64,000 nt of DNA, from positions 16,891 through 80,890 of the forward strand of contig NIVC01003717.1 of assembly GCA_002269645.1 (NCBI GenBank). Direction: 5' to 3'. The notes beneath the pieces are model-generated. The model did no database searches, was not told where the DNA came from, and worked only from the letters and a program-made list of their open reading frames with translations. Made by a program: the position numbers and the translations under genes. Source of the DNA: Macrostomum lignano. Its lineage: Eukaryota. Shown here in pieces: positions 2,999 to 56,329 of this stretch (within the stretch, counting starts at the first letter, position 1; each line of letters begins with the position of its first letter).

Positions 2999-21833
<18,835 letters not shown>

Positions 21834-25043: not shown

Positions 25044-26560
25044 TTACTTACTTACTACTGACGGGGGGCGCAGGCGCCGCGAATAGGCCGCGAGGCCCCT
25101 ATCGCAACCCCAAGGTAAAAGAGCACAAGGATTAGCCTTGGGGGTGCGCCCAGTCCCCGCCAGTAGTCGGCAGGTCCGCAGTGGAGGCATCGGCGACCCT
25201 CATCCGGCCGGAGTCCCGGACGAAGGCGCGGAGGTCTCGGATATTGTCCGCGGTGGTCAGCTCGTCCATCCGCTGGGGGTGGCCGAGGTATTTGTGCCGC
25301 GCCTTGTTGAAGTAAGGGCAGAAGGTGACGTGATGCTCCGCGGTCTCCTCTCCTATGCCACAGAAGGGACAGGTGGGAGGGCAACCGGTTTGCAACGATA
25401 TATGTCTCTGGAAGAATCCGTGGCCGGTTAGGACCATGCACATCTCCCTGAGGTCGGTTCTGTTAAGCGAAATCAGATAATCAGAGACTTTCCTGTTCAG
25501 GTTAGGCATGGCAGAGCGGCTCTGCCTGTACTCGGTGCAGCTGTTCCAGTGGAGCTGGTGCTGCTGATGGAGCCACCTGTTGATATGGCGGGTGACTTGC
25601 GACCTGGGGGTGGGTAGCCTCATCAGACGGTGGTTGCCGTCTGGGTTGCTGCCCTCCTTGGCGAGAGAGTCCGCGAGCTCGTTGCCCAGGATGTTGCTGT
25701 GACCAGGTGTCCAGATAATTCTAATCCTGTTAAGGACTGAGAGAGATTGCACACTGCGGTGGCATTGAGATACTGTAGCAGCGGAGATATTCTCAGTGGT
25801 TAAGGCCTTAATAGCAGCTTGGCTATCAGTGTAGAAATTAATGTCAAAATTATTAATGTTCGCCTGAAACAGTTGCTGGGCACACTGCTCAATGGCGCAA
25901 ATTTCAGCTTGGAAAACTGAGGTGTTCTCACCGAGGTGCAGACTTTCCTGGAGAAGCATCTTACCCTCGTGGAAAATGGCAATACCCGCTCCAGCGCGGC
26001 CGTTGAACAGCGAGCCGTCGGTGAAGCAGTGAATGCCCTGGCTGCGCCGGTTCACACCGACATCCAGCGGAATGTTGTCTCGGCCAGGGATGGCGGTCTT
26101 GAAGCCCCTCCTGATGTTGAGGGCGGGAGGTCGACTATCCACATTGCCCAGGTCCATGTGGATGTTGTTAAGGTCGCGGCGGACAAAGTCCATATGCGGG
26201 ATTAATGTTTTCATTGGCATAAAGCCAGAGGGCGCGTTATTTAACGTTTTATCTCTGATAAGCCGGGAGGCAGACTTCATAGCCTTCGCCCTAATAAATA
26301 GGTGAAGCGGAGGTAGGTTAAGAATAGTGTTCAGCCCCTCGTAAGGGGTGGACGGGTACGCACCTGTGATGGCACGGCAAATGCTGCCCTGAAGCTGGTA
26401 CAGCCGCTGACGGGCGGCCTTCTGCTCCAGCACGCTAGTCCAGATGAGACTCGCGTATGTGATACTGGGCCGGATGATGCCGGTATAAATCCAACGGACC
26501 GTTCTAGGCGAGAGGCCCCAAGTCGGCCCGATGGCTCTGCGCAGCTGGGCAAAGCAGCGT
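25044..26560 (-). mobile_element. 5'-truncated LOA/R1-group non-LTR retrotransposon (RT C-terminus, RNase H, CCHC finger) nested in the RTE
   Basis: Open frame to stop 25132: [23 protein letters not shown], RNase H FTDGS / FQAEICAI / [11 protein letters not shown] / [23 protein letters not shown]...ETAEHH. (TAAG)n tail; 9-bp TSD TTGGATGAC at 25035-25043 and 26561-26569. Confidence 0.93.
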
Positions 26561-26962: not shown

Positions 26963-28248
26963 GGCGTAGCCAAGCACGCTCAGGCGCTTTTCGCCGTGGC
27001 GGCGACCGATGCGTCTGCGCAGCAGGAAGCCGTCGTCAGCCGAGGGGAGTGCGGTCCGAAGCACCCAGTCCAGCAGCAGCACGAAGAGGAACGGCGCCAG
27101 CGTGTCGTCCCGCAGAACTCCTGCATGAAGTGTCGAACAGGTCAGACAGGCTGAGTGTCGCAATACAGCGCCATGACAGCGTCGACTAGCTGCTGGGGTA
27201 CCCGGTAGGCTCGAAGACAAAAGGAAGCGCGGCTCTCAGCACCGAGTCAAATGCGCCTTGCGAAAGTCAACAAAGACAATGATCAGCGTAGACTGGCGGA
27301 TGTGCGCCTCCTCGATGACACGGCGGAGTGCAAGGATCTGTGTCACTGTACCGTGTTGCGGCCGGAATCCGTTCTGCTCGTACCGCAGGTACGGGTCCAG
27401 CACCGACAGCAGACGATCGAGCAGCAGCCGGTTGAAGAGCTTCGCGGTGCAGGGCATCAGCGAGATCCCGCGGTGGTCTTCTTTCCGCGTTGTCCCTGCC
27501 AATTCTTCGGCGAGTTTGAGCGCCTTCTAGACGAGCGGCAGCAGGCCGCTGTCGACGACGCCGTTCCGCGTCCATCACTGCAGCCGGCCCAGACGTGAAG
27601 AGCTGCGCAGTGTGGACGGCCGTCCGGACTCTAACGCGGCGCAAAAAGCGCGTGGCGCTGAATCTGGCCGGTGACACCTCGGAGGAGCGCAGAAAGGAAT
27701 TGCGCGATTTCTTTCTTCGCTGGCATCGTGAACGCGCCCGCGTCGCCGCTGCCCGCCAGCTTTGCGCTCCCACTGGACACGCTGCTCCCAGCTGAGGAGG
27801 ACTTCTGCACCAGACCAGTCACCACGGAGGACGTTGTGCTGTTCGCTCGGAAAAATTAAATGCGGCAAGGCGCTCGGTCCCGACGAAGTCCCGCCGGTCG
27901 AGGCGCTGCGGCTCCGCTGTGTGGCCTCCCAGGTCACAAGCGTCATGAACCGCGTGCTCGCCGGCGCCCCCGTGCTCACCGAGTGGACCGTCGCGCACAT
28001 CGTGCCGACTAATAAGGATGTTTCCCAATTGTGTGTCTTGTACAGTATAAATACATGTGTACTCCACAGGTACATAACATGTTAGACACCATATGCGTTT
28101 AACCACATTCTCTATACTTAAAAAAGATATTTACGTAACAATAATGCAACAATAATTAACACAAGTTTTGCTATCTCAATATTGAAGTCATATTCTCGGG
28201 AGCTCGAGTGGAGTGAATGACGACTAGTGTAAATTTTCATATATTTAA

Positions 28249-30810
28249 CCTCTACGCGACGGGTGGGGTTTAGCATCACCCCTGTCGCCGACGGCTGTCC
28301 CGAAATCGGGACATAGACTATTGGAGAGTCGCTAGAGTTGCTGCTGCAGCACCCCCTTTCCCGCCGGTTTCTCTCTGTCGCGACTGTCGTAGTCATTTCT
28401 TCAGTTCATCTGCACTTGTCTCTGTTTACTGTTTCTTCCCTCTTGGTCCAGTTCAGTCTTGTTATTTTTATCTGTTTCCATCGCTGCCTTCTGATTGGCT
28501 CTTCAACCTCGCCTCTTTTTTAGTCACGAGTTCCACCCCCTCATTTTATTATCTTCACTCCCCCCCTAGTTTAATGTCTTTTAAATATATTCGTTTAGGG
28601 CCCTGTCCAATTACAATTAAATAGCCTCTCTTATTTTTCCTGCACTTTCACTCTAACTATATATTTACTGTCTCACTGGCTGCTGCGCTTCCTCGCGTTG
28701 TTCTTGCCATGGAATCTGAAAACGAATACGCAGAAATTTTCACTGATGACGACTCGCTGGAGTCGCTAGATGGAGTCGAGGACGAGATTACGGAGGAAGA
28801 AGGCGAAGAAGCAGAAGAAGAAGAAGAAAGCATGCAGACAGAGGAAGTTGGTGATGTACCAGAGTGGCAGTTTGTTCAGGCTGGAATGGATGCTGTGCCG
28901 AATGAAGCCGAGTTTCTGGGAACACCAGGGGTTCGCCCAGATTGGAGGCCTCCAGCTTCAGCTGATGGAAACGAAGAGGAGTTTCTGCGTCTGTACCTCA
29001 CTGATGGAATTATTGCAAGCGTGAAAACCTGGACGAATCGTAGGGCGTGGAAGATATTCGAGGAGTGCGCTGACGAAGAGCAGTTGCCGAAGCTGGTAAA
29101 GAACTGGAAAGATTGTACAGACGATGAGGTGAGGAAGCTGTTCGGGATTGTTCTGTTGATGGGCCTGGACAAAAAGCCGGAGATCAGCAGCTACTGGAGC
29201 CAGGACCCTGTTTTCAATTGCTCCTTTCTGTCCATGCCCAATGCCCTCTCGAGAGATAGGTTCAAGCAGCTGCTTTCCTGCCTTCGTTTCTACGACTGCA
29301 CGGATGTTCAGGAAGGGCCCTTGGCCAAAATCCAGCCATTTTTACACCAGCTGCAACAGGTGTGCAGCAACAATTACATGCCGCGTCAGCACATTTCCGT
29401 GGACGAAACGCTCGTCTTGTACAAGGGGCGTCTGCTGTTCAAGCAGTACATCCCGACTAAGAGCAGATACGGTGTCAAGCTGTACTGCCTGTGCGAGTCG
29501 GAGACTGGCTACTTGTGGAATTTCGCAGTCCACTCCACGGAGCACGCGAATGCACAGTTTGGACTGGGACTCGAGTGCGGCGGCCTCTCTATTAGTGAGC
29601 GAATTGTGGCCGAGCTGTGCCGTGAACTCCTGCACATGAATTATAACGTGTTCACGGACAGCTGGTTCACGTCGCATCGGCTGGCCGTTTGGCTGCCAGC
29701 AAATGGAACTCGGCTGACCGGCACTGTGCGCAGCAATCGAGGCGTCCCGCAGTTGCTGCAGCAACTGCAACTGCGACCGACTGCGGCGGCTTTCGCGAGG
29801 AACGGTGAGGTGCTCGCTTGTAAGTTCGTGGACAGGAAGAGCAGCGGAACAAAGACCGTGTATCTCCTGGACACTGCTGGGCAGGCTGCCTGTGTGAACG
29901 TGCCACGAGTCCGTCGGGGAGGCGAGCAGCAGGTGATCGCGAAGCCAGTGACAGTGGTCACCTACTCGAAGAGTATGGGCGGCGTGGACCGTATGGATTC
30001 GGCAGCGAACCCCTACCTGGCCAGCCGGAAAACGCTGCGCTGGTTTCAGAAACTCGCGTTTTACCTGCTGCTGCTTCTGGTTCGTAACTCGTGGATCGTC
30101 TACCGCCAGCACGGAGGTACCAAGACTTTCGTGGCGTTTCTGCGCAAAGCGGTCAGTATTTTGGTGGAGGAGACTGGCAGGGGCAGGCGCCATTTCGCTG
30201 TCAGGGCAGGCCGTCCTGCAGCAGTCGGACCGGCAGGTGACGGCCCTGCAGTACAGCATTTGCCGACCAAAGCTCCATTGAACGCTGCCAATGTTCGGCC
30301 GCGCAATCGATGCCGCGTGTGCAGCGAGAACCGAATCGCGAAGAAGACCGTGTACATATGCCCTGATTGTCCGGGAGTACCAGCACTTTGCATAGGCCAG
30401 TGCTTTAGAAACTGGCACAGCCAACCGCACTGACTGTTACAGACCTCGTCTTCATGTTTTTTTCTTCCACACCCCCGGTTGACTTTGCTCTCTCCATTCC
30501 TAACCCGCTCTCCTTTTTGTCCCCACCCTTGAATAAAATTAAAGTAAATATTTATGGAGTACCCTTACAAGGAGCTTTCCGTTGCTATGGTGTCAATCCA
30601 AAATTATCTGTTCTAATCCTGGTTCTGTTCTGTTAGCACTTTCACTTGTTTTAAATTAAAATAAAGCAGTGTGTCCCGTTTTTGGGACATAGCCGTCGGC
30701 AACGGCAGTGCAGCGCAGCTGCAGTTTTGACCATAGAACTTAGTTTTAAGTTTTCGGCTGCAGCAGAAGTGGCTGCTTGTCCCGTATTCGGGACATCCGT
30801 CGGCTTACCG
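28249..30810 (+). mobile_element. Apparently full-length piggyBac DNA transposon
   Basis: TTAA at 28245-28248 and 30811-30814. Shared terminal/subterminal motif (GC)CGACGG-N-TGTCCCG-N4-CGGGACA at ~28287-28313 and inverted at ~30671-30700 and 30780-30804. Single long transposase ORF. Confidence 0.88.
28709..30433 (+). CDS. piggyBac transposase, 574 aa, uninterrupted
   Basis: Acidic N-terminus; DDD triad ISVDETL / VFTDSWFTS / MGGVDRMD; KYGVKL-like RYGVKLYCLCES; C-terminal cysteine-rich domain CRVC...CPDC....LC...CF..WH. Confidence 0.95.
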   Translation: MESENEYAEIFTDDDSLESLDGVEDEITEEEGEEAEEEEESMQTEEVGDVPEWQFVQAGMDAVPNEAEFLGTPGVRPDWRPPASADGNEEEFLRLYLTDGIIASVKTWTNRRAWKIFEECADEEQLPKLVKNWKDCTDDEVRKLFGIVLLMGLDKKPEISSYWSQDPVFNCSFLSMPNALSRDRFKQLLSCLRFYDCTDVQEGPLAKIQPFLHQLQQVCSNNYMPRQHISVDETLVLYKGRLLFKQYIPTKSRYGVKLYCLCESETGYLWNFAVHSTEHANAQFGLGLECGGLSISERIVAELCRELLHMNYNVFTDSWFTSHRLAVWLPANGTRLTGTVRSNRGVPQLLQQLQLRPTAAAFARNGEVLACKFVDRKSSGTKTVYLLDTAGQAACVNVPRVRRGGEQQVIAKPVTVVTYSKSMGGVDRMDSAANPYLASRKTLRWFQKLAFYLLLLLVRNSWIVYRQHGGTKTFVAFLRKAVSILVEETGRGRRHFAVRAGRPAAVGPAGDGPAVQHLPTKAPLNAANVRPRNRCRVCSENRIAKKTVYICPDCPGVPALCIGQCFRNWHSQPH

Positions 30811-31160
30811 TTAAGCAACGTCAGTTAAATATCTCTAAATTGATTTGGTATAAACGTTAATACTGAAGTTTTTTATCTGCAAGTTTAAATTATAATTAAA
30901 AAAAATTTAGATACTTTAGATGGTGGCTATATTTTAAAATTATATGTATGGCGTATGGCGTACATATATGCGTATGATGTATGGCGGCTCACCCATGCAG
31001 CCAGGAGCCAGTTGACACTTAATAAAATTGTCCTATCCTAGTCTTCGAAGCCTGCTATTGCTATGGCGTTTTAGATATTTTCTACTATTTCATTTGTGTG
31101 TTTCCTGCTCATATTTGATAGTTCATAGAAATTCATTAGGTTTAGGGCCTAGTTCATATT

Positions 31161-32475: not shown

Positions 32476-32646
32476 CTACTTGGGTGCAACCTAGGGATTC
32501 ACCTGGCCATTTCTATTGGCAACATATACATGTAAGTCATTATTGGATGGAATAGTAGTCACGTAACTACTCTTAGCCAATAGTGACTTATATGTGTGTG
32601 TTGCCAATAGAAATGGCCAAGTGATTCCTAAGGTTGCATGTGTATG
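32476..32646. mobile_element. 171-bp hairpin MITE
   Basis: Arms TGCAACC...GGCCATTTCTATTGGCAAC...AAGTCA.TATTGG are near-perfect inverted repeats; 8-bp TSD TCTAAAAC at 32468-32475 and 32647-32654. Confidence 0.85.
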
Positions 32647-32986
32647 TCTAAAACTGTCATTTATAGCCAAAATTTGTTGTGTATTTTTTTCTGGCCTGCT
32701 GCCTTTGCCAGTCTTTTAATCTGACCTTCACTGAAAAAAGTTTGCTGACCCTTAGCTTAGGTTAGGGCATATACTACTTTTTATTTTTTTATCACTTCTT
32801 ATAATAATAAATATAATAAATCTAAGTTTTTATTGAACAAAATATAATGTAGACTTTTGATTTCAAATGCAAATTAAACAGACTTTTGATCCAAATATCT
32901 TTATAAGCCACTTTGTTAATGAAAAAATGATGTAAATGCATTGGTATAGATTTTCTAAAGATAATTTTTTTGATATTCATTATTTT

Positions 32987-33589
32987 CATACATGCGCAAC
33001 CTCCAAAATTTGGTTGGCCGTGCGACTTAGTTTTAACAAAAATGCGACATAGTTTTTGGCCAAAAATGCGACTTACACGTTAAAAATTCGTAAAGCAAAA
33101 TTAAAGCAACTTTGGGTAAACGGCAGGAGTAACTATGACTGTCTTATAAGGGCCCCTATTGCAGCGCATGGCTTAAGTACGCCAGATGCCTACACAACCT
33201 GCGCCACGCTGTGAAATGACTTACCTGTGAAAGAAACCCTAAAGCAAAATTAACGCAGTTTTGGGTAAACGGCAGGAGTAACTATGACTGTCTTATCAAG
33301 CCTAAATGCCTCAGCATCTAATTAGTACTACGCCCGTATTCTATGGGGTGGCATTTTTGCGACTTACCCCTGGTCCACCACCAATGCTGCGCCACGCAGG
33401 CTGATCCGCGCCAGACGCCGTCCGCCAAAATGCCCATGCGCTGCAATCAGGATAAGGGCTAAATGCCTCGTCATCTAATTAGTACTATGTCCGTATTATT
33501 TGGGGTGGGCATTTTTGCGACTTACCCCTGGTCCACCACAATTTACGGTGGCCAGATCGGCCAGGTCGGCCAGCAGTTGCGCATGTATG
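32987..33589 (+). mobile_element. MITE family A copy 1 (TIR CATACATGCGCAAC), carries a 28S-rDNA-like core, interrupted by family B
   Basis: 14-bp perfect TIRs; 8-bp TSD ATTATTTT at 32979-32986 and 33590-33597; 297 bp after removing the nested element and one TSD. Confidence 0.92.
33154..33451 (+). mobile_element. MITE family B (TIR CC(CT/TG)ATTGCAGCGCATGG), 298 bp, nested in family A, same 28S-like core
   Basis: TIRs at 33154-33171 and 33434-33451; 8-bp TSD ATAAGGGC at 33146-33153 and 33452-33459. Confidence 0.9.
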
Positions 33590-34126
33590 ATTATTTTTCT
33601 TAAGCAAGTTACTCTTCTTAAATAATACTTAGCTATTTAAAGTAATAAATATAGAGCATTTGTTGTTAGATTAGACCCTACTTTCTATTTTTGATATCTT
33701 AGTTCTAATTTATAATTTAGGCATCAAAAAGCAAATTAGCAAACTGGGGTATAGAAATACTAGGTACCAAATGCATAGATACCTTAATTCTAATGCTAAT
33801 AGCTTTTTTATCATATATTTAATATAGTGAGAAAATAAAAATGATACTAATAGTTTCACCCATTAGTCTATTACTCATTAACAAATATAAATGTTACATA
33901 TTATATAGAAATGGCTAAGATTGTTTTGATCTTAACTTTAGTTTCTTTTGTTACAATTCTATTAATGTGTATATAGTATCAAAAATCTATTGGCAATATT
34001 CAATTATTTCTATTGATTTATAATCTTAAATATATGTATTATGGATATGATTTCTTTGGTTCAAATATTATATGCAAAGTGTAATATGTTTTCCATTTAT
34101 ATTAAATATGAGGGGTTAAAAGCTAT

Positions 34127-34424
34127 CATACATGCGCAACAGTCGGCCGAGTCAGCCGATCTGGCCGACCAATTTGGCAGCCAACCAAGGTAAGTTGCAA
34201 AAATTGCCACCCCAAAGAATACAGATGTAGTACTAATTAGGTAACGAGGCATTTAGCCCTTATAATACAGTCATAGTTACTCCTGTTGTTTACCCAAAAT
34301 TGCGTTACTTTTGCTTAATGGTTTCTTTCACAGGTAAGTCACATTTTTGGCCAAAAACTACGTCACATTTTTTGTTAAAACAAAGTCGCACAGCCGACCG
34401 AATTTTGGAGGTTGCACATGTATG
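34127..34424 (-). mobile_element. MITE family A copy 2 (298 bp, opposite orientation, empty site)
   Basis: TIR CATACATG(C/T)GCAAC; 8-bp TSD AAAGCTAT at 34119-34126 and 34425-34432; 28S-like core at 34232-34295. Confidence 0.92.
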
Positions 34425-34656
34425 AAAGCTATTAGCAAATAGCCACTAAACTAAAAAAAGGAGGTAGAAAGTCTAACAATAAACTATTACAAATTTATAT
34501 ATAGAAAAAGTCAAACTGTTATTTAACTATAATAACCTAATATGAGCTAAGGTAATATTTATACTATTGAATTGTAAGAGGGAGAAAAGTGCTTCTTTAT
34601 GAGCTTAGCTGATCTTATTTATTAGTTTAGCAATAAGGTAGTGCATATAAATAGAT

Positions 34657-34699
<43 letters not shown>

Positions 34700-34709
<10 letters not shown>

Positions 34710-34970
34710 TGCATAACCTCTTTGATTTGCACTGGCTATGCAACTTTTTTTGACCAAAAATCCAACTTACCTATGAAAGAAACCTAAGCCAATTAATGTA
34801 TGTTTTGGTAAACAATGGGAATTAGTATGGCTAGATATTATTAAATCTAAATGCCTCATAATCTAATTAGTACTAGTCTATTTTTGGGTGGGCATTTTTG
34901 TAACTTAACTTGGCTGGGGCTATTGCTAGCCAGCTAGATTGGCTGGGTCTTATGGATGTATGCATGTGTG
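34700..34970 (+). mobile_element. Old decayed copy of MITE family A
   Basis: Collinear remnants ACTTACCTATGAAAGAAACC, GGTAAAC, TAAATGCCTC..AATCTAATTAGTACTA, GGGTGGGCATTTTTG; ends degenerate, no TSD visible. Confidence 0.7.
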
Positions 34971-35774
34971 CATGGGGTCCCATGTATTTAAAGGGTTGAA
35001 TACTATGCTATTCAAATCACTAAGCTAGTCAATAGCAATGGCCATTGCTAGTGAGTCAATAATTCAGTGTAGGCAACCTAATGCAAAGTTCATTGTATCA
35101 TTATATCATAATAACAATATAAATAGTAAGAAAAAAAGATATTTTCAGAGTTAACTTGTCAGTTTTGTCAATATTTATTTATATTTATTATATTTTATAG
35201 TTGACTTATTCGAATACAAGGAAATACTTTTATATAAATGTGTACTAAGATCTCATATTGTCTTAGGAAATAGATCCAAACCAGCATTGACCATTCTCAT
35301 TCTTGCTTAATTATGCTTTGTCCATGAACTTTCTATCTAGGGTCTATCAAGATAGTGTCTTATGCAAATGAGAAAATGAATTGGTATGCCTATATACTTG
35401 AGCACATAACAGTTCTACCATAGTTAAAGATATTGCTATGTTTATGAGAAGTTACTGATATGGGGTTTTTTAGACAATATATTTATATGGATGTTTATGA
35501 AAATACACATTTTCCATATCTGTATCTAGGCCACTGAATAACTTTGTCTAAAGTTGATGGGCATTGAGTGTCACAGATACATTCTGCGCTATCTATGGAG
35601 CATAGAGACTGCATTCTAGCAACTGTAACAACCAGTAGCTAGAAGTACCAATGCCCCATTTGTGACATAGTCGCTAAGTACTGCTTAGATAGACTGACGG
35701 CAAGAAAGTATATAATAGCAGCCTTAGTAAATTTCTTTTGCATTTGTAAATTTCATCAAGCCAGTCTACAAGCA

Positions 35775-38700
35775 ATGGACTTGGACGCTATTGACAATGA
35801 AGATCAGGAATTTTCTCTACGCGAATCTTGCGGTGTCTATGGCGCCATTTTATTTAACAGTGGCATCAACTCTGAAGCTACGACAGCCGGAGCAAGTTAC
35901 AGAAATACGAGTTCCATGTTAGACTTATTAGTGTTAGGCATGACTGCTCTGCAGCACAGAGGTCAGGAGTCAGCTGGATTAGTGGTGTCAGATGGCGGGC
36001 CAAAAATCTGTGTGCAGCGTGGCATGGGCCTGGTGGCGCAGGCCTTCACGCCTGAACGGTTGGCTTCCTTGTTAGGCGCCGATAAGCCAGTTTGGCGTTT
36101 GGGCCTCGGGCATACTCGGTTGGTTGCTTGTGTTTTACTACTTACTCAGTAGGCAGTTAAGTCTGTTTAGAATTGCTCAGTAATCACCCTGGAAATCTGC
36201 TCAAAGAATCGCCCCTCAAAAAATCCCCCCTCAAAGAATCGCCCCTCAAAGAATTACCCCTCAAAACAGCGCCCTCAAAGAATAACCCCTCAATGAATCG
36301 CCAACTAAAGAATCGCCCCTCAAAGAATCACCCCTCAAAGAATCGCCCCTTAAAAATCGCTCCTTAAAGAATCGCCCCTCAAAGAATCACCCCTTTAAAG
36401 AATCGCCCCTTAAAGCATCGCCCCCAAAGCATCGCCCCTTTAAGGCATCGCCCTCCCAAAGAATCGCCCCTCAAAGCATCCCTAATTAAATTATCACCCC
36501 CTTAGAGAATCGCCCCTCGAAGAATCGCCCCTCGAAGAATCGCCCCTTAAAAATCGCTCCTTAAAGAATCGCCCCCCAAAGAATCGCCCCTCAAAGAATC
36601 GCCCCTCAAAGAATCACCCCTTTAAAGAATCACCCCTCGAAGAATCGCCCCCAAAGCATCGCCCCTTTAAGGCATCGCCCTCCCAAAGAATCGCCCCTCA
36701 AAGCATCCCTAATTAAATTATCACCCCCTTAGAGAATCGCCCCTCGAAGAATTCGCCCCTCGAAGAATCGCCCCTTAAAAATCGCTCCTTAAAGAATCGC
36801 CCCCCAAAGAATCGCCCCTCAAAGAATCGCCCCTCAAAGAATCACCCCTTTAAAGAATCACCCCTCGAAGAATCGCCCCCAAAGCATCGCCCCTTTAAGG
36901 CATCGCCCTCCCAAAGAATCGCCCCTCAAAGCATCCCTAATTAAATTATCACCCCCTTAGAGAATCGCCCCTCGAAGAATCGCCCCTCGAAGAATCGCCC
37001 CTTAAAAATCGCTCCTTAAAGAATCGCCCCCCAAAGAATCGCCCCTCAAAGAATCGCCCCTCAAAGAATCACCCCTTTAAAGAATCACCCCTCGAAGAAT
37101 CGCCCCCAAAGCATCGCCCCTTTAAGGCATCGCCCTCCCAAAGAATCGCCCCTCAAAGCATCCCTAATTAAATTATCACCCCCTTAGAGAATCGCCCCCC
37201 AAAGAATCGCCCCTCAAAGAATCGCCCCTCAAAGAATCACCCCTTTAAAGAATCACCCCTCGAAGAATCGCCCCCAAAGCATCGCCCCTTTAAGGCATCG
37301 CCCTCCCAAAGAATCGCCCCTCAAAGCATCCCTAATTAAATTATCACCCCCTTAGAGAATCGCCCCCCAAAGAATCGCCCCTCAAAGAATCGCCCCTCAA
37401 AGAATCACCCCTTTAAAGAATCACCCCTCGAAGAATCGCCCCCAAAGCATCGCCCCTTTAAGGCATCGCCCTCCCAAAGAATCGCCCCTCAAAGCATCCC
37501 TAATTAAATTATCACCCCCTTAGAGAATCGCCCCTCGAAGAATCACCCCTCAAAAATCACCTATCAAAGAATCGCCCTCAACCAAACAGACAGCAAACTA
37601 ACAAGGTACAGCATATATTATACATCTGTACCATCCGCCGCCACCATAACGCCAGATACTCCACCCTGGGCGCCTCAGAATCAATCAACTGTCAACCGTT
37701 CGTTGTTGAAACAACCTGCGGCCAATTTGCCGTAGCCCACAATGGCGAACTGGTGAATGCTAACAGATTAAAATCTGAAATACTACAAGCCGGTATTGGT
37801 CTGAGCACGGACACGGATAGCGAGTTGATCACACAGATGCTGTGCACCAGATCTCCTAGCCAGTGCTGGACAGAACGGATCACCTATTTCATGTCCAAAT
37901 GCTCCACGTCATATAGCCTGCTGATTCTGACTGGCGATTCTATCTACGCTGTCAGAGACCCGTTCGGTAATAGGCCTCTGTGTCTGGGAGAGATTCTCTG
38001 CGGCGAGTGAGTTGCTCACGTCTGTGTGCGAGCTGCTTTTTATTTGTACTTGTGTTTTATTGCTTGGCATACTTCTATCCTCTCTCTGTCTCCCTGTCTC
38101 CCTCTCTCCCTGTCTCCCTCTCTCTCTGTCTCCCACCCTGTCTCCCTCCCTGTCTCCCTCTCTCCCTGTCTCCCTCTCTCCTTGTCTCCCTCTCTCCCTG
38201 TCTCCCTCTCTCCCTGTCTCCCTCTCTCCCTGTCTCCCTCTCTCCCTGTCTCCCTCTGTCTCCCTCTCTCCCTGTCTCCCTGTCTCCCTGTCTCCCTCTC
38301 TCCCTGTCTCCCTCTCTCTCTGTCTCCCACCCTGTCTCCCTCCCTGTCTCCCTCTCTCCCTGTCTCCCTCTCTCCCTCTCTCCCTGTCTCCCTCTCTCCC
38401 TGTCTCCCTCCCTGTCTCCCTCTCTCCCTGTCTCCCTCTCTCCCTGTCTCCCTCTGTCTCCCTCTCTCCCTGTCTCCCTGTCTCCCTCTCTCCCTGTCTC
38501 CCTCTCTCTCTGTCTCCCACCCTGTCTCCCTCCCTGTCTCCCTCTCTCCCTGTCTCCCTCTCTCCCTCTCTCCCTGTCTCCCTCTCTCCCTGTCTCCCTC
38601 TCTCCCTGTCTCCCTCTCTCCCTGTCTCCCTCTGTCTCCCTCTCTCCCTGTCTCCCTCTCTCCCTGTCTCCCTCCCTGTCTCCCTCTCTCCCTGTCTCCC

Positions 38701-41700
38701 TCTCTCCCTGTCTCCCTTTCCCTGTTTCCCCCACTTTCCCTAATCCCACTTCCCTTTAATTTCCCTACTATCACATCATTCTCCAGTCTCCTACACAAGG
38801 TTTATCTTCTCAGATTCCCATTCCCCTCTTTTCCCTCATAAATTCTTCCTTTCGGCTCTCTGTTCCCTCTGCTAAAGTCAGTCTAATTCTGCACATTCTT
38901 CAACAGGTCGCATTATAATTTACTCACAAGCCAAATTTCCACTCTCTCATATCGCAGCGAAGTCATCGGCTACGCCGTATCATCCGAGAGTTGCGCATTC
39001 CAATCCACCAGCACTAGGCTGCTTCGCGAAGTTCAACCAGGCGAAATTGTTCGCCTGTCGATTCAACAACAGCCTGAATTGTCTGGCGCCGCCAGTACTA
39101 TTGAAACCTGCGCCATCGTACCCCGACCGTCTGCTTCTTCTAGTAGCAATGCAACTGGGGCGTCTGAGTCTACCGCGGTTTTGCCCGCTATGTGTATATT
39201 TGAGTACGTGTACTTTGCTCGGCCGGATTCTCAATTCGAGGGTCAGCAGGTAAATTATCAACACGTCGAGTTTTATTCCGTGTCTTCTACTTATGAGTAG
39301 AAATATGCGCATCTTATCATTCCTTTTACATGGTTTTCATCTTACATGATGTGTGTTAGTTAATTTTAAAGCAGGTCTAACGACTCAAACGACTGCAATG
39401 CGACGTTGAGTGGACACCTCTAAGGGCGCTTTTCTAGCATTATAGAAGCCCTCTTTAGAGTCATTATAGAAGCCCCCTTTAGAGTCATTTTAGAAGCCCC
39501 CTTTAGAGTCATTATAGAAGCCCCCTTTAGAGTCATTATAGAAGCCCCCTTTAGAGTCATTATAGAAGCCCCCTTTAGAGTCATTTTAGAAGCCCCCTTT
39601 AGAGTCATTATAGAAGCCCCCTTTAGAGTCATTATAGAAGCCCCCTTTAGAGTCATTATAGAAGCGCCCTTTAGAGTCATTATAGAAGCCCCCTTTAGAG
39701 TCATTATAGAAGCCCCCTTTAGAGTCATTATAGAAGCGCCCTTAGAGTCATTATAGAAGCCCCCTTTAGAGTCATTATAGAAGCGCCCTTTAAAGTCATT
39801 ATAGAAGCGCCCTTTAGAGTCATTATAGAAGCGCCCTTTAAAGTCATTATAGAAGCGCCCTTTAAAGTCATTATAGAAGCGCCCTTTAGAGTCATTATAG
39901 AAGCGCCCTTAGAGTCATTATAGAAGTGCCCTTTAAAGTCATTATAGAAGCGCCCTTTAGAGTCATTATAGAAGCGCCCTTAGAGTCATTATATAAGCGC
40001 CCTTTGAGTCATTATAGAAGCGCCCTTTGGAGTCATTATAGAAGCGCCCTTTGGAGTCATTATAGAAGCGCCCTTTGAGTCATTATAGAAGCCCCTTTAG
40101 AGTCATTATAGAAGCGCCCTTAGTAACTCAGAGACGCTTGTTGACCTAGGTACCATTTTCATCGGGGCTGTCTTGCCCACAGCACGGAATCAGTAATCAA
40201 ATGATCCTGTTTTCCTTAACCCCTACTTACCGAGTAGCAAATTATGCGAATTTTCTCTATTCTTTTCTTATTTAGGTTTATTCTGTAAGACGTCGATGCG
40301 GTGCTCAGTTGGCCAGCGAGAGTCCCTGTTCAGTAGATTTGGTTTCTACAGTGCCAGAGTCTGCCACTCCAGCTGCCATGGGCTATGCCAGCGCCTGCGG
40401 ACTGCCTTATGTGGAGGTTTGCTGCAGTTCTCTTTGCAGTGTTCTCGGTGTCTTGGGTTATCCAAATGGAACTCCTCACTGTTAGGCCCGTTGGGAGCCA
40501 GCCTCCTAGATCCTCAGTTGCTGGGCCAGCCTTCCAGATCCTCAGTTGCTGGGCCAGCCTTCCAGATCCTCGGTTGCTGGGCCAGCCTTCCAGATCCTCA
40601 GTTGCTGGGCCAGCCTTCCAGATCCTCAGTTGCTGGGCCAGCCTCCCAGATCCTCAGTTGCTGGGCCAGCCTTCCAGATCCTCAGTTGCTGGGCCAGCCT
40701 CCCAGAGTGTCAGTTGCTGGGCCAGCCTCCCAGATCCTCAGTTGCTGGGCCAGCCTCCCAGAGTGTCAGTTGCTGGGCCAGCCTCCCAGATCCTCAGTTG
40801 CTGGGCCAGCCTCCCAGATCCTCAGTTGCGGGGCCAGCCTCCCAGATCCTCAGTTGCTGGGCCAGCCTCCCAGATCCTCAGTTGCGGGGCCAGCCTCCCA
40901 GATCCTCAGTTGCGGGGCCAGCCTCCCAGATTCTCAGTTGCTGGGCCAGCCTCCCAGATTCTCAGTTGCTGGCCCAGCCTCCCAGATTCTCAGTTGCTGG
41001 GCCAGCCTTCCAGATCCTCAGTTGCTGGGCCAGCCTTCCAGATCCTCGGTTGCTGGGCCAGCCTTCCAGATCCTCAGTTGCTGGGCCAGCCTCCCAGATC
41101 CTCAGTTGCTGGGCCAGCCTCCCAGATCCTCAGTTGCTGGGCCAGCCTTCCAGATCCTCAGTTGCTGGGCCAGCCTCCCAGAGTGTCAGTTGCTGGGCCA
41201 GCCTCCTAGATCCTCAGTTGCTGGGCCAGCCTCCCAGATCCTCAGTTGCTGGGCCAGCCTCCCAGAGTGTCAGTTGCTGGGCCAGCCTCCCAGATCCTCA
41301 GTTGCTGGGCCAGCCTCCCAGATCCTCAGTTGCGGGGCCAGCCTCCCAGATCCTCAGTTGCGGGGCCAGCCTCCCAGATCCTCAGTTGCTGGGCCAGCCT
41401 CCCAGATTCTCAGTTGCTGGGCCAGCCTCCCAGATTCTCAGTTGCTGGGCCAGCCTCCCAGATTCTCAGTTGCTGGGCCAGCCTCCCAGTGTCAGAGCCC
41501 ACTCTAACCCGACCCCATCTGCCCTCAGGTATTCTGCAAGAACCGCTACATCGGTCGCACCTTCATACAGCCCAGCAATCTGCTGCGTCAAGTTGGCGTA
41601 GCAAAAAAATTCGGCGTCATCGAAGAGAACGTACGCGATAAGCGCATCGTGCTCATTGACGACTCCATTGTTCGGGGCAACACAATGGGCCCTATTGTTA

Positions 41701-48660: not shown

Positions 48661-48711
48661 TGTCTTGCGTTCACTTGTGTACATCGAGTTAAATGATTGC
48701 TGTTTACTATA

Positions 48712-50304
48712 GCTTTTTGCAGCCCATTTGGGCTTGCGCGCATTGAATTTAATCCAAGATACGTTTGCCAATGCAATGGAGCTTTTGTCTATGGTAGCAA
48801 GGCTGGCACAGTGGCATTTGATTTGGTCCAACAAGTATCAATTTGGTCCAACAAGCATCAATTTGGTCCAACAAGCATCAATTTGGTCCAACAAGCATCA
48901 ATTTGGTCCAACAAGTATCAATTTGGTCCAACAAGTATCAATTTGGTCCAACAAGTATCAATTTGGTCCAACAAGCATCAATTTGGTCCAACAAGCATCA
49001 ATTTGGTCCAACAAGCATCAATTTGGTCCAACAAGCATCAATTTGGTCCAACAAGTATCAATTTGGTCCAACAAGTATCAATTTGGTCCAACAAGTATCA
49101 ATTTGGTCCAACAAGCATCAATTTGGTCCAACAAGCATCAATTTGGTCCAACAAGTATCAATTTGGTCCAACAAGCATCAATTTGGTCCAACAAGCATCA
49201 ATTTGGTCCAACAAGCATCAATTTGGTCCAACAAGTATCAATTTGGTCCAACAAGTATCAATTTGGTCCAACAAGCATCAATTTGGTCCAACAAGTATCA
49301 ATTTGGTCCAACAAGCATCAATTTGGTCCAACAAGTATCAATTTGGTCCAACAAGCATCAATTTGGTCCAACAAGCATCAATTTGGTCCAACAAGCATCA
49401 ATTTGGTCCAACAAGTATCAATTTGGTCCAACAAGCATCAATTTGGTCCAACAAGCATCAATTTGGTCCAACAAGCATCAATTTGGTCCAACAAGTATCA
49501 ATTTGGTCCAACAAGCATCAATTTGGTCCAACAAGCATCAATTTGGTCCAACAAGCATCAATTTGGTCCAACAAGTATCAATTTGGTCCAACAAGCATCA
49601 ATTTGGTCCAAACGCTCGTGAGCCATTCGGCAGACTCTTGCCTTTTCGCAACTGCCTTTCGCAACGGCTGGAATTTCAGCGTCTCTACCAGCAGTTTCCA
49701 GTCGCTTTTCCATAGCACTGCCAATAGTCGAAATCTGATAACCAACTGGAACTGTTCTTTCAACTTCTGCTGCATTTTTGCACCGTTAACAAAGGGTTTC
49801 TCAACTGCATCGAGTAGCAGTTGGACCTGAGGCTCTCGCAACTTGCCTTGGCGATTGCCACCCTTTCGCAGGCGACCTCTGCCGCCAGTGGTTTCAACGC
49901 GCTGATAGATGCTGTAAACCATATTTTCTTTTACATTCAGCAGCCTTGCAATGTCCTTTGGGTATTCACCTCTGTTCAGTGCTTCAATCACAAGCCAATG
50001 GTTCGACAGCCCAGCATATGGTTCAAAGAAAAGATGGTTTACAGAGAGCTGTGGAAAAGCGACAGAAAATTGTTGGTAGAGACGCTGACATTCCAGCGGT
50101 ACGCAACAACCTGCAGGCAGTTGCCAAAAAGCGGGAGTTTGCCGAATGGCTCACGAGCGAGCGTTTGGACCAAATTGATGCTTGTTGGACCAAGTTAAAT
50201 GCCGCTGTGGCAGCCTTGCTACCATAGACAGAAGCTCCGTTACATTGGCAAACGTATATTGGATTAAATCCAATGTGTGTAAGCCCAAATGGGCTGCAAA
50301 AAGC
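48712..50304 (-). mobile_element. Internally deleted IS630/Tc1-mariner-like element with long (foldback) TIRs and an internal 20-bp satellite
   Basis: TIR GCTTTTTGCAGCCCATTTGGGCTT... flanked by TA at 48710-48711 and 50305-50306; inverted homology extends ~270 bp. ORF 49578-49991 encodes a paired-like HTH (IARLLNVKENMVYSIYQRVETTG...KGGNRQGKL); no DDE domain. Confidence 0.8.
48821..49610. repeat. 20-bp tandem array ATTTGGTCCAACAAG(C/T)ATCA, 39.5 copies
   Basis: Exact register from 48821 to 49610; two variants differing at one base. Confidence 0.98.
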
Positions 50305-53131: not shown

Positions 53132-53214
53132 TGGTGCATTTCTTAGGCGTTTATGTGGATAGTGTATAATCTAATAAGATTGGGTAGAAATATCATATCG
53201 AACCTCCTTAACCG

Positions 53215-55785
53215 GCCTTCCAAAACTGCCATCTTCTCAAATTTGCCGTTCTTTCGAACCTGCCATCCTCTTCCCCCAAATCTGCCGTTCTTCTACCGAA
53301 ACTGCCATCCTCTTTCCCCCCAAATCTGCCCTTCTACCGAAATTGCCATCCTCTTCTCCCCCCCAAATCTGCGCTTCTACCGAAATTGCCATCCTCTTCT
53401 CCCCCCCCAAATCTGCGCTTCTACCGAAACTGCCATCCTCTTTCCCACCAAATCTGCCGTTCCTCTACCAAAACTGCCATCATCTTTCCCCATCAAAATC
53501 TGCCGTTCCTCTACCAAAACTGCCATCATCTTTCCCCATCAAAATCTGCCGTTATTCTACCGAAACTGCCATCATCTTTCCCCATCAAAATCTGCCGTTC
53601 TTCTACCGAAACTGCCATCATCTTTCCCCATCAAAATCTGCCGTTCTTCTACCGAAACTGCCATCATCTTTCCCCATCAAAAGCTGCCGTTCTTCTACCG
53701 AAACTGCCATCCTCTTCTCCCCCCAAATCTGCTGTTCCTCTACCGAAACTGCCATCCTCTTCCCCCAAATCTGCCGTTATTCTACCGAAACTGCCATCCT
53801 CTTTCCCCACCAAATCTGCCGTTCTTCTACCGAAACTGCCATCCTCTTCTCCCCCAAATCTGCTGTTCCTCTACCGAAACTGCCATCCTCTTCCCCCCAA
53901 ATCTGCCGTTATTCTATCGAAACTGCCATCCTCTTTCCCCACCAAATCTGCCGTTATTCTACCGAAACTGCCATCCTCTTCCCCCCAAATCTGCCGTTAT
54001 TCTACCGAAACTGCCATCCTCTTCCCCCCAAATCTGCCGTTCTTCTACCGAAACTGCCATCCTCTTCTCCCCCCAAATCTGCCGTTCTTCTACCGAAACT
54101 GCCATCCTCTTTCCCCCCAAATCTGCCCTTCTACCGAAATTGCCATCCTCTTCTCCCCCCCAAATCTGCGCTTCTACCGAAACTGCCATCCTCTTTCCCA
54201 CCAAATCTGCCGTTCCTCTACCAAAACTGCCATCATCTTTCCCCATCAAAATCTGCCGTTATTCTACCGAAACTGCCATCATCTTTCCCCATCAAAATCT
54301 GCCGTTCTTCTACTGAAACTGCCATCATCTTTCCCCATCAAAATCCGCCGTTCTTTTACCAAAACTGCCATCATCTTTCCCCATCAAAATCTGCCGTTCT
54401 TCTACCGAAACTGCCATCATCTTTCCCCATCAAAATCTGCCGTTCTTCTACCGAAACTGCCATCATCTTTCCCCATCAAAATCTGCCGTTCCTCTACCAA
54501 AACTGCCATCATCTTTCCCCATCAAAATCTGCCGTTCTTCTACCGAAACTGCCATCATCTTTCCCCATCAAAAGCTGCCGTTCTTCTACCGAAACTGCCA
54601 TCCTCTTCTCCCCCCAAATCTGCTGTTCCTCTACCGAAACTGCCATCCTCTTCCCCCCAAATCTGCCGTTATTCTACCGAAACTGCCATCCTCTTTCCCC
54701 ACCAAATCTGCCGTTCTTCTACCGAAACTGCCATCCTCTTCTCCCCCCAAATCTGCCGTTATTCTACCGAAACTGCCATCCTCTTTCCCCACCAAATCTG
54801 CCGTTCTTCTACCGAAACTGCCATCCTCTTCTCCCCCCAAATCTGCTGTTCCTCTACCGAAACTGCAATCCTCTTTCCCCCCCCCAAATCTGCCGTTATT
54901 CTACCGAAACTGCCATCCTCTTTCCCCCCCAAATCTGCCGTTATTCGACCGAAACTGCCATCCTCTTTCCCCCCCCCCAAATCTGCCGTTTCTCTACCAA
55001 AACTGCCATCCTCTTTCCCCACCAAATCTGCCGTTATTCTATCGAAACTGCCATCCTCTTTCCCCACCAAATCTGCCGTTATTCTATCGAAACTGCCATC
55101 CTCTTTCCCCACCAAATCTGCCGTTATTCTACCGAAACTGCCATCCTCTTTCCCCACCAAATCTGCCGTTTCTCTACCAAAACTGCCATCCTCTTTCCCC
55201 CCCAAATCTGCCGTTATTCTACCGAAACTGCCATCCTCTTTCCCCACCAAATCTGCCGTTCTTCTACCGAAACTGCCATCCTCTTTCCCCCCAAATCTGC
55301 CGTTATTCTACCGAAACTGCCATCCTCTTTCCCCACCAAATCTTCCGTTTCTCTACCAAAACTGCCATCCTCTTTCCCCACCAAATCTGCCGTTATTCTA
55401 TCGAAACTGCCATCCTCTTTCCCCACCAAATCTGCCGTTATTCTATCGAAACTGCCATCCTCTTTCCCCACCAAATCTGCCGTTATTCTATCGAAACTGC
55501 CATCCTCTTTCCCCACCAAATCTGCCGTTTCTCTACCAAAACTGCCATCCTCTTTCCCCACCAAATCTGCCGTTATTCTATCGAAACTGCCATCCTCTTT
55601 CCCCACCAAATCTGCCGTTATTCTATCGAAACTGCCATCCTCTTTCCCCACCAAATCTGCCGTTTCTCTACCAAAACTGCCATCCTCTTTCCCCACCAAA
55701 TCTGCCGTTATTCTATCGAAACTGCCATCCTCTTTCCCCACCAAATCTGCCGTTATTCTATCGAAACTGCTATCCTGTTTGCCCC
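53215..55785. repeat. 2.6-kb array of a ~43-bp unit (AAATCTGCCGTTATTCTACCGAAACTGCCATCCTCTTTCCCC) downstream of EXOSC7
   Basis: Seen directly; source of the two 826-aa pseudo-ORFs. Confidence 0.97.
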
Positions 55786-56329
55786 CAAATAGTAGAAGCC
55801 AGTTTTGCGTCAGTCCACGCTAGGGAACTTAATAATTGGAGGAAGTTTGGTTGTTCTCATGCTTAGTCCGATGGGGGCAGCATTTGCTTCGATGCGAAGC
55901 GGTCTTTCAACAAGTTTCTTTTCTTTTAGCTTGTGGAAGATAATTGCCGGTGAAAATCGGCACTTTGATGTCACTTCCCAGCCCTCCCCCATCTTCTGTC
56001 GGGAGTTTTTTCTCTTTTTTGTTCTAATTTTAGCTGTATTTCTTCTTGTATCGTAGGGGACACTTTGCTCGTCACAATATTGGTAGCTAGGCGACTCTAG
56101 TGAAAGCGCACGGGATGCTTTAATTCAATTGTTGCTACAATATGTTCTGTAAGCATTTTTCTTAATTAAATATAATTACAAAGTTAACAGCAATCGTTCC
56201 ATTTATGATATTTGTCTACCGTGTGTCTTATTAATTTGTACTTTGGTGTAGCTTATATGCGTCATATTGTAACTCTGGAGATCCACTAGGAATCGTTAAG
56301 AATCTTCATCTGCACAAAATCAGTGGAAT

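Follow-up and report, generated by a model that had tools for sequence, protein, structure and literature searches.

The locus described here raises the question of whether a DNA transposon was directed to its target or came there by ordinary nesting. In the flatworm Macrostomum lignano, a MITE (B) lies inside another MITE (A1), at a position of A1 that corresponds to the place in the 28S rRNA gene where R2 nicks the DNA. The locus is part of a 64,000-nt stretch of M. lignano DNA (GCA_002269645.1, NIVC01003717.1, 16,891-80,890), called the window below, which is AT-rich and repeat-rich. Seven further loci of the same assembly (L001-L007, 137 kb) were picked via piggyBac genes by protein look-up, with L003-L007 (94 kb) reached via piggyBac cluster members, and the total scanned was 201 kb (201,131 bp). 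A profile search (nhmmer) of the 201 kb returned one B and six A-like copies, of which the window contributed three, L002 two and L001 one; it found no copy of either in L003-L007. What we favour, with a probability of roughly 0.55, is that a chimeric MITE really did insert into another MITE, by nesting of the ordinary kind and maybe aided by a regional preference.

MITE-in-MITE nesting is common and has been catalogued in maize and rice. As in such cases, one short TIR element lies inside another and has a clean TSD, the setting is an AT-rich intergenic nest, and a sister copy gives the empty site. Unlike them, the two elements have a common core, and B landed at what is, by position, the counterpart of a well-known rDNA insertion site.

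The original prediction described B as a 298-bp element with its own TIRs and an 8-bp TSD, and this was confirmed base for base, with a perfect ATAAGGGC on both sides. The features of B are the following:

33146-33153, no strand: left TSD copy of B, ATAAGGGC, positional homologue of 28S AAGGTAGC
33154-33451, plus strand: B, chimeric MITE of 298 bp, from self-BLAST and nhmmer, with no ORF above 50 codons
33154-33171, plus strand: left TIR of B, CCCTATTGCAGCGCATGG, pairing with 33434-33451 at 16/18
33180-33209, plus strand: left subterminal motifs of B, CGCCAGATGCC at 33180-33190 and CTGCGCCACGC at 33199-33209
33217-33381, plus strand: core of B common with the A family, about 165 bp, bounded by the A-type motif (T)GCGACTTAC
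33434-33451, minus strand: right TIR of B, CCATGCGCTGCAATCAGG in plus-strand letters, read from sequence
33452-33459, no strand: right TSD copy of B, ATAAGGGC, read from sequence and seen in self-BLAST

The ATAAGGGC repeat is not extendable on either side, and the TSD is thus exactly 8 bp. With TIRs of 18 bp (16/18), a TSD identical at 8/8 positions, a length of 298 bp and a longest open frame of 50 codons, B has the appearance of a MITE. A 14-bp core of the TIRs, ATTGCAGCGCATGG, is exact at both ends. The arms are GC-rich (56% in 33154-33216 and 66% in 33382-33451), and the left subterminal motifs recur in the right arm as direct repeats, the CGCCAGATGCC-type (CGCCAGAYGCC) at 33409-33419 and CTGCGCCACGC at 33387-33397; these repeats are plausibly transposase-binding sites. 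Single-strand folding of B revealed nothing beyond TIR pairing (z = -1.9).

B occurs as a single copy in the 201 kb, in the same orientation as its host A1, and a B family is on that count putative. Exact look-ups of three ORFs within or across B gave no further copy, and exact-pattern scans of JGI metagenome and GTDB genome contigs gave 0 matches for the paired B TIRs and 0 for the mimic-specific core. A 42-codon frame inside B, compared by HMMER with 1.8 billion representative proteins, retrieved only unrelated tandem-repeat translations. A protein search with an amidophosphoribosyltransferase-like exon (35775-36152), as a route to a paralogous or allelic locus, returned no match, and in the literature no description of A or B elements was found.

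The host A1 and its relatives were delimited in the same DNA:

32979-32986, no strand: left TSD of A1, ATTATTTT, the same octamer standing at 33590-33597, directly outside the A1 TIRs
32987-33589, plus strand: A1, young A-family MITE split by B, TIRs with 0 mismatches at 32987 and 33576
33590-33597, no strand: right TSD of A1, ATTATTTT, read from sequence
34127-34424, minus strand: A2, uninterrupted A copy, TSD AAAGCTAT at 34119-34126 and 34425-34432
34701-34972, plus strand: A3, old decayed A-like copy, nhmmer E=5e-63, 0 CpG
L001 20380-20674: A4, A-like copy, TSD TGCGTACA/TGCGTATA (TGCGTAYA)
L002 15419-15660: A6, A-like copy, 0 CpG

Without B and one TSD copy, A1 measures 297 bp, and the similar length of the two elements (about 298 bp each in the original prediction) is real. 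The characters of a MITE are found in A as well: a 14-bp TIR that is exact in A1 (CATACATGCGCAAC / GTTGCGCATGTATG), an 8-bp TSD in four copies, a length of 297 bp and, as in B, no open frame above 50 codons. Its A-like copies number six in the 201 kb. A1 and A2 are 83% identical over their full length (self-BLAST). A2 had been named as the empty site, and rightly: it is uninterrupted, it reads ...GTATTATAAGGGCTAAATGCC... across the site, with GCCCTTAT, the reverse complement of ATAAGGGC, at 34256-34263, and it therefore serves as the empty site for the insertion of B.

Several properties of the A family agree with ordinary nesting. The four readable A-family TSDs, ATTATTTT, AAAGCTAT, TGCGTAYA and, for A5 in L002, TTCATGCA, are all 8 bp long and mutually unrelated, and A insertion is thus not site-specific, which also weakens the proposal of a system aimed at the 28S site. 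Core-bearing MITEs are clumped, with four within 2 kb in the window (32987-34972), two within 1.1 kb in L002 (14590-15660) and none in the 94 kb of L003-L007. Such clumping raises the chance of nesting, and it suggests nests, local hopping or mutual attraction. As to age, the CpG count in A1 is near expectation and A1, A2, A5 and B keep their CpGs, while observed against expected counts are 0 and 9 in A3, 0 and 3.5 in A6, and 3 and 11 in A4. Because A1 and B both retain CpGs, both are judged young. Transitions at the CpG positions of A1 make up 42% of comparisons versus 18% at other G/C positions, which points to CpG hypermutability in M. lignano and possibly to cytosine methylation of repeats.

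The view that A and B have different ends around the same core of about 165 bp also held, the core of B being 88% identical to A1 and 84% to A2. The A motif TGCGACTTAC bounds the common core on both sides and occurs twice more in the left arm of A, outside the common segment. A core bounded by an A-specific motif that is repeated elsewhere in A indicates that an A element donated the core of B, and that B is a chimera. The core is a mosaic: its right half (33300-33381) is 92% identical to the corresponding part of its own host (A1, 33460-33539) and 78% to A2, with at most 78% to any other copy, and shares CCCCTGGTCCACCAC with A1 and otherwise with none, while its left half is nearer to A2 (88%) than to A1 (85%). 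The mosaic agrees with recombination between subfamilies, with gene conversion of limited extent or with common subfamily descent, and an origin in place is not demonstrated by it.

Such an origin in place would mean that a core-less B-type element inserted first and that A-core sequence later came to occupy its interior, through abortive gap repair or gene conversion. We hold this to be very doubtful. Deletion derivatives of cut-and-paste elements are known to arise with filler DNA taken up from nearby sequence, and this counts for the idea together with the closeness of the right core half to A1. The left half, being nearer to A2, counts against it, and so does the overall divergence from A1, which at 12% is hard to square with a recent copy of the host; nor is an intact core copyable from the interrupted A1 itself. 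The corollary, that the coincidence of position reflects how B arose and not where B chose to land, is accordingly a faint prospect.

The position of B acquires its interest from a 28S-derived block in the core. Searches with Rfam LSU gave no match at gathering thresholds, nor at E<=10 on 32900-35000, and the elements were therefore aligned directly to the 28S target oligonucleotides of two R2 papers, one of them 84 nt long, which established the similarity to 28S. Three segments align:

33114-33153, plus strand: left part of the 28S-derived block of A1, GGGTAAACGGCAGGAGTAACTATGACTGTCTTATAAGGGC, ungapped alignment to the 84-nt 28S oligonucleotide
33460-33483, plus strand: right part of the 28S-derived block of A1, TAAATGCCTCGTCATCTAATTAGT, ungapped alignment to the 28S oligonucleotide
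33263-33326, plus strand: 28S-derived block of B, 53/64 ungapped identity to the 28S oligonucleotide

The two parts in A1 form 64 nt that align without gaps and are identical at 56/64 positions, and the local alignment score is 37, against at most 13 in 500 shuffles. In this ungapped register the TSD of B falls on 28S AAGGTAGC, with the R2 first-strand nick at its exact centre. The nick lies between AAGG and TAGC, as read from cleaved oligonucleotides (PMC13000458).

The original prediction had equated the TSD with the R2/I-PpoI segment of the 28S mimic. In positional register this is exact; in its letters the octamer matches 28S at only 3/8 bases, and the correspondence is positional only. 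The low match arises because five consecutive bases at the nick differ, 28S having AGGTA and A1 TAAGG. Outside this 5-nt lesion (33146-33150), the A1 block is identical to 28S at 56/59 positions (95%). A run of at least five among eight mismatches in 64 positions has P ~4e-4, and such clustering argues for a single complex event or a selected change and not for drift. The lesion may be a scar that repair left in the 28S copy from which the block came; it may also reflect selection for a pad that R2-type nucleases do not cut. It concerns the corresponding columns of A2-A6 and B; in the family-majority form the change reads as a TTA duplication with a TAG deletion, and TAAGG occurs in A1 and A2.

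Two enzymatic systems, R2 and I-PpoI, act in this phosphodiester neighbourhood of 28S. I-PpoI cuts 28S between CTCTCTTAA and GGTAGC, and the TTAA of I-PpoI and Pokey lies two bases upstream of the R2-nick position. R2 is RNA-mediated and I-PpoI is an intron-encoded nuclease; unlike B, neither has TIRs or an 8-bp TSD. Since the MITE has other bases at five positions of the R2/I-PpoI recognition core, cleavage of it by either would not be expected.

Among the copies, the site octamer reads ATAAGGGC in A1 and A2, ATTAAGGC in A6, ATTAAGCC in A4, ATTAAATC in A3 and ATCAAGCC in B (33295-33302), and A5 has a replaced block. The site in B is indeed altered, as had been pointed out; the change amounts to ordinary family variation of the kind seen in A4, A6 and A3. 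The further proposal that a changed site protects B from self-insertion found no support, for ATCAAGCC is one base from the octamer of A4 and nearer to the family majority than is ATAAGGGC. Hypervariability of the site, as possible excision footprints would leave, was considered and found no support, the octamer ranking only 29th-59th of 175 eight-column windows. Five of the six A cores are unoccupied, that of A3 among them, and the core of B itself is uninterrupted too. The variability of the octamer, its poor match to 28S and the empty A cores fit ordinary nesting, as do the clustering of the copies and the non-specific TSDs of A.

Against ordinary nesting stand the low chance figures. With six targets in 201,131 bp, the chance that an 8-bp duplication spans the nick-homologous bond is 2e-4 under uniform insertion and 1.2% within the 1.7-kb nest. 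It is 2.4% for an insertion that falls somewhere in an A element, and under each of the three models a duplication centred exactly on the nick is seven times rarer. With a generous class of 15 'interesting' offsets, the chance rises to as much as 5%. These are small figures for one event that was picked after the fact from a scan, and the position of B may be coincidence. Two further points do not sit easily with ordinary nesting: the sole B copy found sits at this very site, oriented as its host, and if B is as rare as it appears, an occupancy of 1/6 is what would be expected if all B copies sat in A cores.

These points lead to the reading in which B is site-specific. The B transposase would read 28S-like flanks (GGAGTAACTATGACT... 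/ ...AAATGCCTCGTCATCTAATTAGT) and cut 8 bp apart around the R2-nick position, which we consider unlikely. The exact register with 28S AAGGTAGC, with the nick central, the low chance probability and the 56/59 identity of the flanks speak for it. Since the octamer that was hit is not 28S-like, any 28S-directed recognition would need the conserved flanks. Besides the octamer, the reading is weakened by the single event, chosen after the fact, by the five other A cores and the B core that stand unoccupied, by the lack of site specificity in the A family and by the failure of the self-immunity claim, the B octamer being one base from that of A4. That the natural targets are 28S genes, with the 28S-derived A and B cores as dispersed landing pads, is a tentative idea of similarly low standing; the 28S junction for B-type termini in rDNA would be TCTTAAGG/TAGCC. 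In its widest form, B or an autonomous partner would recognise the R2/I-PpoI/Pokey flanks of 28S, and the A and B MITEs would spread thousands of harmless pads as a self-propagating safe harbour, with the lesion shielding the pads from R2-type nucleases; this, too, is possible at rather long odds. On this one event, the 28S-site-specific transposon system that was originally proposed is a minority possibility.

The strongest precedent is Pokey, a DNA transposon with MITE derivatives, TTAA duplications, piggyBac TIRs and a known transposase, for which the 28S site is a proven target and which reads extended flanks. Like B, Pokey uses a site in the same 28S stretch, a single TTAA (that of TCTTAAGGTAGCC), and carries internal rDNA-derived sequence, and its sites outside rDNA echo the 28S flanks, including AAATG. 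This favours targeting and weighs against ordinary nesting, as Pokey proves that the same 28S site is a DNA-transposon target and the extended flanks that it reads are 95% conserved in the A core. Unlike in B, the rDNA piece of Pokey comes from the IGS and not from the target, and the TSD is TTAA as opposed to 8 bp; B, for its part, is known from an A core and not from a 28S gene.

Dada elements offer a second precedent for strict target specificity (PMC3706591). They are DNA transposons confined to multicopy RNA genes, and short subterminal sequences of theirs are found again in the target, always equally far from the TSD, which makes them comparable to the system proposed for B; they differ in having 6-7-bp TSDs and no TIRs, in targeting snRNA and tRNA genes and in being defined by their transposase. 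The heptamer AAATGCC occurs in B at 33422-33428 (right subterminal region, 17 nt from the end) and in the target flank at 33461-33467, one base past the right TSD. This recurrence is reminiscent of the target-matching subterminal repeats of Dada, though a 7-mer match could be due to chance.

B might also have been drawn to A1 by its payload, with an A transposase or a host factor, bound to the A-derived core of B and its A-type subterminal motifs, tethering it to resident A copies, so that B would insert by preference into or beside these without recognition of 28S as such. In an analogous case, P elements with a fragment of engrailed or linotte are known to insert near the locus from which the fragment was taken. 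Like them, B would be an 8-bp-TSD cut-and-paste element with an internal payload that matches the landing sequence. To our knowledge, homing of P elements has been shown experimentally only in Drosophila and with regulatory fragments, and for B, tethering is an analogy only. The 88% core identity of B and its host in the same orientation, the right core half closest (92%) to that host, the strong clustering of the elements and the A motif TGCGACTTAC in both the core of B and the target would be in keeping with homing. Homing by itself, with one event to explain, gives merely a 2.4% chance of spanning the nick position, and the clustering may equally stem from a common preference for AT-rich intergenic DNA; the reading is therefore quite improbable in our view.

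As to superfamily, a TSD of 8 bp makes hAT, P, Merlin and MULE-like transposons the candidates for B. The 8-bp TSD agrees with hAT; the hAT terminal and target consensus does not, as the ends of B (CCCTA/CCTGA) and A (CATAC) depart from TIR YARNG, and 0/5 TSDs have both the T2 and the A7 of the weak target consensus nTnnnnAn. In the 201 kb, no autonomous partner with matching TIRs or subterminal motifs and an ORF was found. Membership in the Dada superfamily (6-7-bp TSD, no TIRs, snRNA/tRNA genes) was rejected, B having an 8-bp TSD, 18-bp TIRs and a MITE core as its target. Neither the length of the TSD (8 bp, not TTAA) nor the TIRs agree with a piggyBac or Pokey affiliation, which was rejected.

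A form of the piggyBac assignment would survive if B were a Pokey-like, piggyBac-type MITE with a variant 4-bp TSD, ATAA, and if the extra identity, GGGC, were coincidental. The ends of B begin with CCC and CCT, like piggyBac-superfamily TIRs, and ATAA is a documented minor TSD of Pokey. The DNA also contains two young piggyBac families whose transposase genes are intact, and a member of one lies 2.3 kb upstream of the nest. To set against this, the idea calls for a coincidence of 1/256 and leaves GGGC unpaired at one end, the TSDs of the related A family are plainly 8 bp long, and both local piggyBac families have TTAA TSDs and TIRs (CCTCTACGCGACGG / CGGTAAGCCGACGG and CCTCTTCAAGACTG / CCTCCAAAAGTCTG) unrelated to those of B. 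We therefore give it hardly any credence.

A complete piggyBac element (window 28244-30814) has TTAA flanks, TIRs CCTCTACGCGACGG / CGGTAAGCCGACGG and an intact transposase ORF of 574 codons (28709-30433) with 98% identity to M. lignano BOX15_Mlig002331g1, and it is 98.6% identical to a copy at L001 9571-12112. The second family, in L002-L007, has 99.4% identity between loci. From these identities, both families look recently active.

Taken together, the history of the locus runs as follows. A is an abundant non-autonomous cut-and-paste family of about 297 bp, with a 14-bp TIR and 8-bp TSDs of unrelated sequence, whose centre contains a 64-nt 28S fragment that spans the R2/I-PpoI/Pokey site with the five nick bases replaced. 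B, likewise non-autonomous, differs from A in its 18-bp TIRs and in its GC-rich arms with subterminal direct repeats, and its central 165 bp most likely came from an A element. A transposase with 8-bp staggered cuts put B into the middle of A1, duplicating ATAAGGGC. The insertion with its TSD, the empty site in A2, the common core, the 28S derivation and the exact register with the R2 nick are all seen in the sequence. The position itself is probably due to ordinary nesting in a dense MITE nest, perhaps with a general preference for AT-rich nests or for A elements, and not to a 28S-site-specific transposase.

If the position is due to chance, what remains is a tidy, ordinary MITE nesting and one modestly new finding, namely that MITEs of a flatworm carry part of the 28S coding sequence, R2 site included. 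TEs with rDNA fragments include SINE28, 5S-derived SINEs, Cassandra and Pokey with its IGS repeats (reviewed in 2024, PMC10946416). Like these, A is a non-autonomous element with a captured rDNA piece; unlike them, its fragment spans the R2 site with a lesion exactly at the nick, and among the elements tabulated in that review, none with a piece of 28S coding sequence is a DNA transposon or a MITE (PMC10946416). If targeting were true, B would represent only the second rDNA-site-directed lineage of DNA transposons after Pokey, and the first case of non-autonomous elements that disseminate copies of the target itself. The landing-pad system would then be a variation on the theme of Pokey and Dada, and it would matter both for how transposons find safe harbours and for how site-directed integration tools are designed.

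The window contains further repeats. Just upstream of the nest (window 32485-32638) lies an unrelated hairpin-like MITE, the 62-nt arms of which are 87% complementary and separated by 30 nt. A large tandem array with a 32-bp period starts at 8430 and has 107 registered copies, and two CT/GA-rich satellite blocks of about 650 bp each (15270-15920 and 38074-38740) stand in inverted orientation, 22 kb apart. Coding-frame-like satellites are many more, at 40300-41600, 48700-49800 and 53150-55870. Retroelement fragments are frequent in the window, many with 92-100% identity to M. lignano proteins, and the search with retroelement ORFs matched chiefly M. lignano UniProt proteins. On the minus strand, a GIY-YIG (Penelope-like) endonuclease ORF (13416-14255) continues in frame into a nucleoside-transporter exon, and a 433-codon retroelement ORF with RNase H (25132-26433) has UniProt relatives that form fusions with a wide variety of M. 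lignano gene models.
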